The position numbers and the translations under genes are program-made. A stretch of 64,000 nt of DNA. Source: Sminthopsis crassicaudata. Its lineage: Eukaryota. Position 1 is the first letter of the stretch; every line of letters starts with the position of its first letter. Positions 13,201 to 42,100 of this stretch are shown piece by piece. The stretch lies in NCBI RefSeq assembly GCF_048593235.1, contig NC_133618.1:610470889-610534888 (forward strand). Direction: 5' to 3'. Under the pieces are notes generated by a model that saw nothing but the letters and a program-made list of their open reading frames with translations, was not told where the DNA came from and ran no database searches.

Positions 13201-14262
13201 TCCTCTAAAGGAGTTCTTGAGCGGTGTGGATCCCACATATAAGATATGGACTTTGGCAAATCTAGAATTGATGCTGGAGACCTGGGCGGGGGAGAATTGA
13301 AAAAGGACGCATTCAAAATATCAGTAGCTGTCAGACAGACATCCCGGTAACAGGATAGTCCTAACTAAATTGGGGCTGAAGAGAAGTAGGTTCTACCCGC
13401 AGCTGTCTCCTGCCTAACTAGAAGGGCTACTTGGGCAAGTCCCCTAATCTGTTTCAGTTTTCTCATTAATAACTTGGGAAAGCGTTATCTGCCAATTTCA
13501 AAACACCAATCGTTTGTACAATTAAAGTCTCAGGGAAGCTCTGAGGTTAGAGACGGGCCTCTCAGGGCCGGAGGGGCTGCCGGCCTTTGGGACCCGCCAG
13601 GCGCCTCCGCAGAGTGGGGGTTTCATAGTTTTGCCCCTCAGAACAGAGACGCGGGAACGAACACACTGGGGAATTTTCGGGGTTCGGTTCCGGAAGACAA
13701 AGGTCGGCGGCGGGGGAGGGGAGGGCCTCACCTTGCAGGTGACGATGGTCCCCACATCTGGCAGCATCTGGGATTCGGTCTCTCGCGTCACGGACACCAC
13801 GGGCAGCTGCGGAGGGGACCAAGAAGAGGTTCGCGAACCGCGCACAACTCCCGCCCGGGGGTCCCGCGGGCCACGTGGAGGCCTGGGGGGGGCTCCGGGC
13901 CACGGTTCCACCTGGGAGACCCCGGGCGGGCTTTGGAAGGCGAAGGCCCCCCCGCAGCCGCGGCCTCACCTCGCCGTTGTCGCTCGTCTTCACCACGCAG
14001 CCCGAGAGCGAGGAGAAGATGTAGCCGTGCCGGGTGTAGGTGCCGCTGCCGGGGCTGGCCTCGTCCAGGTGACACAGTCGCTCGCCTGCGGCGGACAAAC
14101 GCGCGGTCCTCCTCCCGAACGGCCTCTCCCCCCGGCCCGGCCGCCCGCCGCCCGCGGCCTCCCCGCCCCGGAGCCTCACTCACCCGGGATGCAGTACCGC
14201 GACGGCGGCGCCGCATCCACCGCTTCCCAACAGCCGTTCTGGGAGGCCGGGCGCCGATCCAT
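10287..14262 (-). CDS. EXOSC1: Exosome complex component CSL4 (EXOSC1); start codon ambiguous (see findings)
   Basis: Exons in transcript order: 14262(or ~14216)-14184, 14085-13970 (116), 13806-13732 (75), 13281-13193 (89), 12221-12188 (34), 10938-10888 (51), 10743-10659 (85), 10393-10287 (107, TAG). All GT-AG. Spliced peptide: ..APPSRYCIPGERLCHLDEASPGSGTYTRHGYIFSSL..PDVGTIVTCKVSSINSRFAKVHIL..KSFRPGDIVLAKVISLG..ELGVVVAHSESGVQMVPISWCEMQCPRTHTKEFRKVARVQPEFLQT*. Confidence 0.96.
12742..12933 (-). mobile_element. Very short L1 3' end in EXOSC1 intron 4
   Basis: L1 3'UTR similarity. 19-bp TSD with 1 mismatch, tgtagtg(c/a)atgtaatcttt, at 12723-12741 and 12934-12952. Confidence 0.8.
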
Positions 14263-15170
14263 TAGCACAGCGAGGGCTGAAGGCCTCACGGACAGAATGG
14301 CCCACAGGCTGGCGCACCACGCGGCTCGTGTGGGTTGCCCCGGGCCTTCCCTCTCCTGCTGGAACTCCAGCTCCCAGGGTGCTCCGGGAGAAGGAAAGGA
14401 GGGGGCGGGGCCGGGCCTTCCGCGCTTGCGCCGTGGGGAACGCCGGGGCGGTAGCGGTCCTGGCGCCGCCGCCGGTTGGGGCTGGGGATGATTGGTCTGA
14501 CTGAGTGGGGCCGGGGTCGGCTTCGGCGGAGGCTGCTGTGAGCCGTGGAGGGTTCGGGGCTCGACTGGGTCGTTGCCCGGCGGACAGGAGGTAAGGGGCC
14601 CTCCGGGGTCGCACTCTCCTTCCCCACCTCCTTCCTTCCTCTCGGGATTTCGGGCCCCCAGCCGTGGGGGGCGTGGAAATACGGGGCGCGAAAGGGGTCA
14701 AGGCGCGTCTCCATCCCCGCGGAACGTCGGGGGCTTCGCCCTTCCGGGGATCTCCCCGTATCCGGGGGCAGGGGCACTGTGAGGTGGAGGGGCTTCTTTT
14801 CGCTCCCCTCCTCCTCCTTCCTAGCTCTGCTCGGACCGGCTTCGTTGCACCTGCTTCCCCCCACCTGGCGGACGGGCTCGGCTACTGCCGAGCTGGGGCA
14901 AGGAACCCCCTGCGACCGAGCTCGCCTAAACGGTCACACTGGCGCGGCGCGGCATCCGGCAAAGTTCGGCCCCGCTCCCGGGGGCGGGGGGGGGCCCGCA
15001 GCCGCGGTGTCCGGCGGAGCATCTGCGGACCTGCGTCCGGGTCACCCAGTCAAGTCCCGTGGCGGCCTCTCGGGGCGGGGGCTCCTCCCTCCCCCCTGCC
15101 CGTTAAGCGGAGGACGGCGAGCTTAGGTCTGAGACTCGATTGTTGGGCGAGCGAGGTCCGAGAATGATCC
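13540..15170. promoter_or_regulatory. CpG island / bidirectional promoter of EXOSC1 and ZDHHC16
   Basis: Very GC- and CpG-rich. Covers EXOSC1 exons 1-3. GC box ggggcggggc at 14402-14411, NRF1-like gcgcttgcgc at 14422-14431, inverted CCAAT at 14491-14495. Confidence 0.9.
14440..14590 (+). other. ZDHHC16: Probable non-coding first exon of ZDHHC16 (start approximate)
   Basis: Strong donor gag|gtaagg at 14590/14591 inside the CpG island. The first coding exon has an acceptor only 6 nt before its ATG (ctgtag|gaggccATG, 17506/17507), so an upstream UTR exon is required. Confidence 0.6.
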
Positions 15171-39100: not shown

Positions 39101-42100
39101 TCAATACAACCAAAATTAGAAGGAAAGCAGAAAGCTGGGAAATAATCTTTATAGCAAGTATTTATGATAAAGGCCCCATTTCTCAAATATATAGAGGACT
39201 GAATCAATGAAATATATGTATTTTTGGCTGTAGCTTGTTCCTTTAATATGTAGAGGATCTGAAGGAGGAAGGTAGGGAGGAATGACTTCTAAGCATGAGT
39301 CCTGGCCAGTGCAAAGCTAGGAAATAGGAGCTGGAGCACAGGGGGATAAGAACAGCAAGATCCATGGACTTAATAACAGTACATTAGAGCTCTGAAAGCC
39401 CGGAAATTTTCCTTTTATCCTAGAGGCAGACGTGGGAAGGTAGTGACTGGAGGCAGGAGGACAGCAAGCAGGCCAGAACCAAAGAGTGGAGTGGGCTCTG
39501 GGAGCCAAAAGATGGGGGCATATGTGAAAAATACTGCAAACAAAGAAACAGAAAGAGGATTTCCCAGGATAGACACATGTGCTGAGGCTGGAGACTGGAA
39601 GGATGGGGCTGCCCTCAAAAGACAGAAGAAGTTCCAAAGAGGGAGAGATTCTGGAGAAAACAGGATGAGTTTGGTTTTAAGTATGCTGAACCTGCAATGT
39701 TTTTAGGACATCCAGTTTGAACATCTGATAAGCAGTGATCCATAACTGGAAAAGGACTGGAGCTAGCTATGTAGATGTAGGAGTCATCTGCATGGAGATG
39801 AGAAGATACTTAAGTCTATGGAAGCTGAAGAGACTGCCAGAGAGGGAGGGAGAGAAAAAGAGGGGGGGGGAGGGGCAGCTAGGTGGTGCAGTGGATAGAG
39901 CACCAGCCTTGAATTCAGGAGGACCCGAGTTCAAATCTGATCTCAGACACTTAACACTTCCTAGCTGTGTGACCTTGGGCAAGTCACTTAACCCCAGCCT
40001 CAGGAAAAAAAAAGGGGGGGGGAGAGAGACGGAGGGGAGAGGGGGAGGAGAAAGAAGGGAAAAGAAGACAGAGGGGGAGGGAGAGAGGAGGGGAGAAGAG
40101 AGGGGGGAAAGGAGAGGGGAGAGGATGGGGGAAAAAGAGGGGGAGGGTCCACTCACTTAGGGGATGTGGTGAACCAGGAAAAGACTGGGATGATAGATCA
40201 TGCTTTGTGCTAAAGAAAATTACAGAGACAATTAGGAAGAAGTATAATAATGGATTATCCTGATTTATGACCATTATACATGAGAAAGCTAACATTCCTC
40301 CTTCAAAATATGTCCATCATTTCCCCTAACACCTAAACTGGAAAAACTGGATCCTCTAATTGTCTGAAGTTTCATCTCTGCAAGAGACTTTTTTTTTCCT
40401 CTGGGTAACTTAACCATTTTATTATTATTAATAAGACCAGAATGATCAATGGCCATCTCACACAGACCAAAGTCAGTCAAGGCAATAGGCTCATAGTTTA
40501 CATATAGCTTTCAAAAGCTCAGGTGGTTAATGGGGTTGAGACCCTGGCCCAGAGAAATTATCTCCATTCCCACCTAGGGCCATCCAGACAAAAGCATTTG
40601 TTCCTACCCAAGCTTTAAGTAGAACATAATAGGCTTCTTTACTCTAGATTATTAAATTCCTAGAAAAGGTTGGATCAGGTCAGACCAAGGTGGAGAAGAA
40701 TCAATGCAATCTCATTATTAGCAATGTCCTTCAAGAAAAAGGAACTTTTTAAAAATGAGGAACTTAAAAAAAAAGGGTGAGAACCTCCGAAACTCCCCAA
40801 GATATTGGTTACTAATAATCATTTCTCATGTTTCCTCATTTGATTCTTGACAGGTATGGCCTCCTCAATGAATCACTGATAAGACAAACACTTTATTAAA
40901 GCTTTCTAACTATCAGACTTATAAAGGGAGACAATGTGAGAGAAAAAAGGAAAAGACTGACAATATCAAAGTAGCAATCCTCTTGGATCTTACAGATAAA
41001 AGGCAGAAGGGAAAAAGTAAATAGCAAAATAAAATTTATAGACGCATGTCCTTGGTCTGATGCAGACTTTTGGTTTGGGTACAATCTCATAACAGTTGTT
41101 CTCCAGCTCAGATCACCTGTAGAAATTCTCTGCCAAAAATTTCCTACAAAATTCGTCTTAACACAATTTTAAATTTACTTTGTCAATAAACCAGGTCAGA
41201 TAATGAAAATTAGCTTAAACCTTATGTTTATTACTAGAAAATTAAACATGAAACTTTTTATACCAGGGAATTTACAATTNNNNNNNNNNNNNNNNNNNNN
41301 NNNNNNNNNNNNNNNNNNNNNNNNNNNNNNNNNNNNNNNNNNNNNNNNNNNNNNNNNNNNNNNNNNNNNNNNNNNNNNNNNNNNNNNNNNNNNNNNNNNN
41401 NNNNNNNNNNNNNNNNNNNNNNNNNNNNNNNNNNNNNNNNNNNNNNNNNNNNNNNNNNNNNNNNNNNNNNNNAAAACTAGAATGCAAATTTTATACATGG
41501 CATTATTTATTCCCCCATTAGGAGTATGAGATTCTGCTAAAGAGTTAATAACATAACACTTTTCACAAGAAGATTTTCATACAGAAATGAATTCATTTAA
41601 AAGCTGCCAGATTATCTGCAATCATAACAAAAGGTTATGGGATAGGATACATGGGTATCTTGAGTAGTCAATTTTAAAACCATGCATACCAAGTAAATTA
41701 TTTAAAATAAAACATTTTCAACTCCTAGCCATGTTCAAACGAATAATGCTTAGTAAAAGTGGATTTCTTACAAAACAGATCACAAGCCATTCTTCTTCTA
41801 AGATAACTAACTTTATTGATATTCTTTCCCCCAAGAGACATTACTGCAGCACTTCTCAAGAAGGCAGCTTCATTTAGGAACTCAGCATAATACAAGGAAC
41901 TCACATTGTCAAGGGGAAAACAACTACAGTGAGAAGTATAAAAGATCATTTTCACAAGGATATGTATATTGCATATAGAGAGAGAATGAAGATGGGCAAA
42001 GAAAAGGACCAAATTGAGCATATCCTAGTTCCAGAGAGCTTTTTGGATTCCAAATCCATCTTTTCTATAGGCATTCAAGTCAATTTTTAAGCAGCATGGT

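Follow-up and report, generated by a model that had tools for sequence, protein, structure and literature searches.

EXOSC1 (CSL4) is a core subunit of the RNA exosome. The described systems that come closest to the case reported here are proteins with N-terminal extensions translated from upstream in-frame non-AUG starts, for which dedicated surveys exist (PMC3105428, on extensions that are conserved, and PMC9789052, a catalogue from 2022 of human proteoforms). To judge from the available parts of these surveys, the cases collected there share with EXOSC1 of the dunnart Sminthopsis crassicaudata an upstream initiator placed in frame with a conserved protein, as well as an extension that is itself weakly conserved. 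The dunnart gene differs from the surveyed cases, as far as these are described in the same parts, in that its upstream codon is an ordinary AUG, the canonical one has been lost, and the extension would be an obligatory part of the protein instead of an alternative proteoform. Neither survey names EXOSC1 in its accessible text, nor do the supplementary files examined for PMC9789052, and in a search of the literature no paper was found that features both EXOSC1 and Sminthopsis.

Extended EXOSC1 proteins are also present among public gene models. RefSeq models with an in-frame ATG in the leader occur in placentals, namely in the dog, the fox and mustelids (12 extra residues) and in colobine monkeys (16 extra residues). 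These placental models retain the canonical methionine, unlike those of dasyurids, and their extensions (MRSRLRFPP.. and MRNRLRFHPGFG..) share almost nothing with the extension sequence found in marsupials. The human EXOSC1/CSL4 protein, as represented by the structures 2NN6, 6D6Q and 6H25, matches its dunnart counterpart from end to end, the dunnart protein having alanine at residue 17 in place of human Met1 and 16 residues in excess. The models most similar to the arrangement described below are those of the dasyurids themselves, i.e. the dunnart (XP_074152091.1) and the devil (XP_031812066.1 and the three UniProt entries A0A7N4PQG2, A0A7N4UYX9 and A0A7N4PXP3), all of which share the upstream start ATG and the N-terminus MDRRPASQNG[C/S]WEAV[D/E]AAPPSRYCIPG. 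No sequence difference separates these database entries from the reading given here; they are computed models, which carry no comment on the lost methionine and no experimentally determined start.

Results

The window is a stretch of 64,000 nucleotides from the S. crassicaudata genome (contig NC_133618.1 of the assembly GCF_048593235.1), and all positions refer to it unless another species is named. The EXOSC1 gene, the features of which are compiled in table 1, was identified with a query consisting of residues 31–71 of a natural 205-codon ORF (13565–14179, minus strand) that contains exon 2 in frame. This query led to XP_074152091.1, a RefSeq protein of 211 amino acids from S. crassicaudata annotated as "exosome complex component CSL4 isoform X1". 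When the protein was compared in turn with the window by tblastn, every EXOSC1 exon was matched on the minus strand from 14262 to 10290 with 100% identity of the exonic parts, which bears out the statement in the earlier note that the remaining exons of the gene are intact. The 211-residue product contains the ECR1_N domain (PF14382; residues 24–59, E = 1.7e-11, 44.1 bits with a cut-off of 27) and the EXOSC1/CSL4 C-terminal domain (PF10447; residues 111–151, E = 6.9e-16, 59.4 bits with a cut-off of 21.2). In HMMER comparisons with human CSL4 (chains 6h25_I, 2nn6_I and 6d6q_I), dunnart residues 17–211 are collinear with human residues 1–195 (E = 1.5e-120 at best, ~1e-120 for the others), human Met-1 faces dunnart Ala17, and the body of the protein is ~90% or more identical to its human counterpart. 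An AlphaFold2 model of the 211-residue protein, built from an 11-row alignment with a view to disorder of the tail, was of too low confidence to be informative (mean pLDDT 30.5).

Several other elements were noticed in the window. Phosphoglycerate-mutase-like exons, which probably belong to PGAM1 to judge from their sequence, are located at 2166–2321 and 4142–4327 on the plus strand (last exon included), in a tail-to-tail arrangement with EXOSC1. Three ORF fragments (548–724 on the minus strand, 6357–6563 and 8959–9276 on the plus strand) have in common the pattern ..GKLWYM.VMEYYCSVRN.QQEEYRE.. and look like remnants of interspersed repeats in introns and intergenic space. A run of 193 Ns occupies positions 41280–41472.

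Table 1. Features of the dunnart EXOSC1 locus (positions in the window) and corresponding codons in other marsupials.
Feature	Position	Strand	Remarks
Promoter block GCACCCTGGGAGCTGRAGTT	14361..14382	-	near-invariant in all four species aligned (dunnart, devil, Dromiciops, koala); a short way upstream of where the RNA contig ends
Exon 1	14184..14351	-	extent as reached by the RNA contig (0 differences, 0 gaps); 14351 marks the minimum reach of the 5′ end and not a mapped transcription start site (TSS), which contig ends cannot place
Start ATG of the annotated models	14260..14262	-	context gtgctaATGg, C at −3 and G at +4; same start as in XP_074152091.1
16-codon N-terminal extension MDRRPASQNGCWEAVD	14215..14262	-	in frame, no intervening stop
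GTG (Val15), candidate near-cognate start	14218..14220	-	G at −3 and +4
Out-of-frame ATG	14214..14216	-	spans the junction of GAT and GCG; T at −3 and C at +4
GCG (Ala17), orthologous to mammalian Met-1	14212..14214	-	from protein and codon-by-codon DNA alignments
Intron 1	14086..14183	-	98 nt, GT..AG; donor gt at 14183-14182
Exon 2	13970..14085	-	GERLCHLDEASPGSGTYTRHGYIFSSLSGCVVKTSDNGE; phase 1
Exon 3	13730..13806	-	LPVVSVTRETESQMLPDVGTIVTCK; spliced in RNA to exon 2 and exon 4
Exons 4-8	10290..13284	-	tblastn matches ~13284-13186, 12223-12173, 10941-10657 and 10403-10290; coordinates approximate, as the matches run past exon ends into introns
Devil, upstream ATG to donor			ATG GAC CGA ... 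GCG GTG GAG GCG GCG CCG CCG TCG CGG TAC TGC ATC CCG G / gt
Dromiciops, same region			... GTT GTG GCT ATG GCG CCG CCG ...
Koala, same region			... GTC ATG GCT ATG GCG CCG CCG ...

The end of exon 1 reads, on the minus strand, gaagcg GTG GAT GCG GCG CCG CCG TCG CGG TAC TGC ATC CCG G, followed by the donor gt. The region is a CpG island with 70–75% G+C, and from 14480 to 14180 the minus strand contains two ATGs only, at 14262–14260 and 14216–14214. The frame of the latter, taken exon by exon with exons 1 and 2 read separately, covers the last 11 codons of exon 1 (MRRRRRGTASR) and 31 more in exon 2, where it ends with TGA; if used, it would yield a peptide of 42 amino acids. The letters quoted in the earlier note, its in-frame ATG at 14262–14260, its GTG with G at −3 and +4, and the out-of-frame product with a stop in exon 2 are all found in the window as that note had described them. 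It was likewise right in calling the ATG at 14216–14214 out of frame, but wrong in placing it at the site expected for the mammalian initiator, as it is the GCG at 14214–14212 that aligns to human M1. The ATG shares a single base with this Met-1-orthologous codon, being made up of the last two letters of GAT and the G of GCG. It is found in the dunnart only, the devil having GAGGCG at the same place, and is a chance trinucleotide in a weak context.

The integrity of the region was assessed at the level of assembled contigs from two sequencing runs. Run X9 (DNA), which comes from a sample other than the probable source of the assembly, provides one contig of 2823 nt (depth 72) that covers 13650–14550 with no indel and with two substitutions relative to the window, at 13993 and 14437. 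At the former position X9 has T and the window C (plus strand), which turns the codon 13993–13991 from GTG to ATG and Val58 into Met (GCVVK to GCVMK); human CSL4 carries Met at the position aligned to dunnart Val58. As seen in these contig-level data, the change may be a missense polymorphism. Run X11 (RNA) provides a contig of 361 nt (depth 30) consisting of the blocks 13730–13806, 13970–14084/5 and 14183/4–14351, which joins exons 3, 2 and 1, with the GT..AG introns between them (163 and 98 nt) removed, and has 0 differences from the genome. Since it is spliced across GT..AG introns, X11 truly represents RNA. Its loose end at 13730 reads codons of exon 4 (SSINSRFAK), and its opposite end, at 14351, extends 89 nt past the ATG at 14262–14260. 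Dunnart EXOSC1 is expressed and is correctly spliced across exons 1–3 into exon 4.

An alignment with orthologues, a check that the earlier note had suggested, reveals the same length of the start region in the DNA of the devil, Dromiciops and the koala, with the canonical ATG lost in the dasyurids. The stretch from the upstream ATG up to the donor measures exactly 79 nt in these three species as well as in the dunnart, and the alignments are gap-free there (table 1). The devil is covered by two devil-type assemblies (GCA_902635505.1 and GCA_048593225.1) with 99.2–99.5% mutual identity over the locus. The codon orthologous to that of Met-1 is GCG in the dunnart and the devil and ATG in the DNA of Dromiciops and the koala; it corresponds to Met in the protein models of the bilby, the wombat, opossums and placentals, the states of the three marsupial groups being taken from these models. 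Column 17 of the protein alignment contains Ala in two dasyurids only and Met in nine other mammalian models. The canonical ATG was converted to GCG by two substitutions with the length unchanged, and dasyurids alone have lost it among the lineages compared. Of the two readings that the earlier note had offered, a genuine change of the start codon specific to the lineage holds, with GCG in the dunnart and the devil, ATG or Met in outgroups, and no indel.

The upstream ATG, located 16 codons before the canonical one (hereafter the −16 ATG), has a broader distribution. The RefSeq models of Dromiciops (MEWSSASRNGCWEVVAMAPP) and the bilby (MDLQPASCDGCWEVMAMAPP) begin with it. It is present also in koala DNA, where its frame is closed by TGA as codon 3 (ATG GAT TGA) and the model begins MAMAPP, and the wombat and opossum models begin at the canonical Met. 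The devil and Dromiciops share with the dunnart the GTG at 14220–14218, which in the devil likewise has G at −3 and +4; koala DNA reads ATG at this codon, and the bilby protein model has Met. The −16 ATG is older than dasyurids and was already present in the Australidelphian lineage. The occurrence of the −16 ATG and the canonical ATG across marsupials implies an ancestor with two in-frame ATGs, and this state was resolved in opposite ways, with the upstream frame closed in the koala and the downstream ATG lost in dasyurids. Outside dasyurids the extension is poorly conserved (9 of 16 residues common to Dromiciops), and this, together with the koala TGA at codon 3, argues that it is not an old essential peptide. 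A word search with dunnart residues 1–40 retrieved the dunnart and the devil only; the full-length proteins of other marsupials are inside one 90% cluster. As for the adjoining intron 1, it measures 98 nt in the dunnart and ~125 nt in Dromiciops, and in the devil it houses a tandem array (~18 copies of a G+C-rich 35-nt repeat) whose length differs between the two devil-type assemblies.

No other ATG occurs in the leader up to 14351, which makes AUG 14262 its first AUG. According to the scanning model, the first AUG of a leader should be the main start, so AUG 14262 should be the main start in the dunnart, with a predicted protein of 211 amino acids as the product. Some leaky scanning is expected because the context of this AUG is moderate (C at −3), and transcripts that begin downstream of 14262 may exist alongside the leader represented by the contig. 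The N-terminal extension from ATG 14262, also considered in the earlier note, is supported by the location of this codon within the spliced mRNA, by its position as the first AUG and by its use in RefSeq, Ensembl and UniProt models. Comparison of the dunnart with the devil shows 43 of 48 nt identical in the extension, 65 of 90 in the adjacent 5′UTR and 31 of 31 in the rest of exon 1 (Fisher p = 0.019 for extension versus 5′UTR), and four of the five differences in the extension fall at codon position 3 (binomial p = 0.045). Such a pattern would be expected for a translated stretch, with the statistics coming from very few sites.

The surroundings of the −16 ATG differ between dasyurids and the other two marsupials for which we aligned DNA. 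In the koala and Dromiciops this ATG lies within CCAATGG, the sequence CCAATTGG is found 29–47 nt upstream of it, and there is an out-of-frame ATG at +25 (CGCAATGG); all three elements are absent from both dasyurids, in which the two proximal CCAAT/ATTGG motifs have been lost from the stretch corresponding to 14310–14260 of the window. The deep conservation of the −16 ATG may reflect a CCAAT box in a bidirectional promoter, not a start codon. The conserved promoter block upstream of exon 1 (table 1) presumably resembles a ZNF143-type site. Run X11 additionally includes a low-depth RNA contig (depth 7.2) at 14459–14550, starting ~107 nt beyond the EXOSC1 contig, which probably belongs to a divergent plus-strand gene. 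On the plus strand at ~18565 an exon end interrupts a DHHC motif, which suggests that the divergent gene is ZDHHC16. A scan of 14150–14750 for bacterial-type promoters and terminators found nothing, this type of scan being unsuited to a eukaryotic CpG-island promoter.

Discussion

We consider it very probable that dasyurids have undergone a real and fixed turnover of the EXOSC1 start codon, in which an upstream AUG provides an obligatory 16-residue N-terminal extension, and that no frameshift is involved. The −16 in-frame ATG already existed, alongside the canonical ATG, in the Australidelphian lineage. With the upstream AUG occupying the first position of the leader, its canonical counterpart would have become redundant and would then have been lost by drift. 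Scanning ribosomes would now initiate at AUG 14262 and yield a 211-residue EXOSC1/CSL4, comprising the 16-residue tail and a normal body made up of ECR1_N (24–59), the S1 region and, towards the C-terminus, the EXOSC1 domain. The N-terminal peptide expected from such a start is (Ac-)MDRRPASQNGCWEAVDAAPPSR.

Several other readings of the locus deserve attention. The earlier note had raised the possibility that one G was dropped from GC-rich DNA in the consensus and that the canonical ATG GCG GCG CCG is in reality intact, and it is true that a single inserted G recreates MAAPPSRYCIPG in a region this rich in G+C. However, the independent DNA contig and the spliced RNA contig are both free of indels, both devil-type assemblies match the window in length and lack an ATG at the canonical site, and the 79-nt spacing from ATG to donor is identical in Dromiciops and the koala, so a one-base deletion or consensus error is exceedingly improbable. 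The extra-G sequence ATGGCGGCG is refuted for the dunnart start by the DNA and RNA contigs and by the lengths in the devil, Dromiciops and the koala, all of which lack it; the reappearance of MAAPP upon insertion of a G is a coincidence. Loss of the canonical start, combined with an AUG at 14216 that opens a 42-codon frame, might also be taken as a sign of a decaying locus, with translation starting at AUG 14216 or at Met79 in exon 3 and no normal CSL4 being made. Such decay is scarcely credible for a gene encoding a core exosome subunit in which every exon is intact and agrees with the annotated protein at 100% identity, the encoded body retains its close similarity to human CSL4 (E = 1.5e-120), and the mRNA is present and spliced; moreover, the gene is built in the same way in the devil, which lacks the out-of-frame ATG. 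A pseudogene is ruled out by the intact, expressed and highly conserved exons. The GUG at 14220–14218 is another candidate for an alternative start, as it could serve as the main or a substantial initiation site for a protein of 197 amino acids, near the canonical length. Its context is good (G at −3 and +4), the devil and Dromiciops likewise have GTG here and the koala and the bilby ATG or Met, and with C at −3 of AUG 14262 some ribosomes may scan past the latter. Nevertheless, an in-frame AUG lies 42 nt upstream within the same mRNA, so the GUG is not the first usable start, and in the dunnart the leaky ribosomes would also meet the out-of-frame AUG 14216, 4 nt downstream. Near-cognate codons initiate far less efficiently than AUG. 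Nor was EXOSC1 found among the non-AUG extended proteoforms in the accessible text of PMC3105428 or in the text and supplements consulted of PMC9789052. We regard a major role of the GUG as quite unlikely; since the same mRNA carries an in-frame AUG ahead of it, it would be at most a minor start.

A further proposal concerns the order of events that led to the use of the upstream AUG, and would refine the start-codon turnover favoured above without contradicting it. Remodelling of the promoter may have come first: in other Australidelphians the −16 ATG would belong to a CCAAT box in promoter sequence that is not transcribed, and in dasyurids the proximal CCAAT boxes would have been lost, an upstream TSS would have brought the −16 ATG into the mRNA, and the canonical start would have been lost thereafter. 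This history is consistent with the presence of CCAATGG, CCAATTGG and the +25 ATG in the koala and Dromiciops and with none of them being found in either dasyurid, with the reach of dunnart RNA 89 nt upstream of ATG 14262, and with the closure of the upstream frame at codon 3 in the koala. It fits less well with the RefSeq models of Dromiciops and the bilby, which start at the −16 ATG (possibly driven by homology), and the function of the CCAAT boxes is deduced from the motif alone. On balance, we view this scenario as tentative, possible but rather less likely than its negation. A still broader and more speculative version, which we think improbable, would hold that a bidirectional EXOSC1–ZDHHC16 promoter was remodelled, that the ATG of a former CCAAT box became the initiator, that all dasyurid exosomes carry a constrained, lineage-specific 16-residue CSL4 tail, and that leaky scanning in the dunnart possibly adds a species-specific, arginine-rich peptide of 42 amino acids from AUG 14216.

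The turnover of the EXOSC1 start codon in dasyurids, as we reconstruct it, is an event of an ordinary type, and public gene models have already incorporated the relocation. Our picture of the RNA exosome is left unaltered by it, and the functional effect of the tail is probably small. Its chief value lies in a warning to annotators: a projection of the human or placental coding sequence onto dasyurid genomes would flag the essential gene EXOSC1 as "start lost" or "frameshifted", whereas the gene is actually intact and expressed, with a predicted start 16 codons earlier. Dasyurid EXOSC1 would also offer a clean, small case of start-codon turnover that proceeded via an intermediate with two in-frame AUGs.
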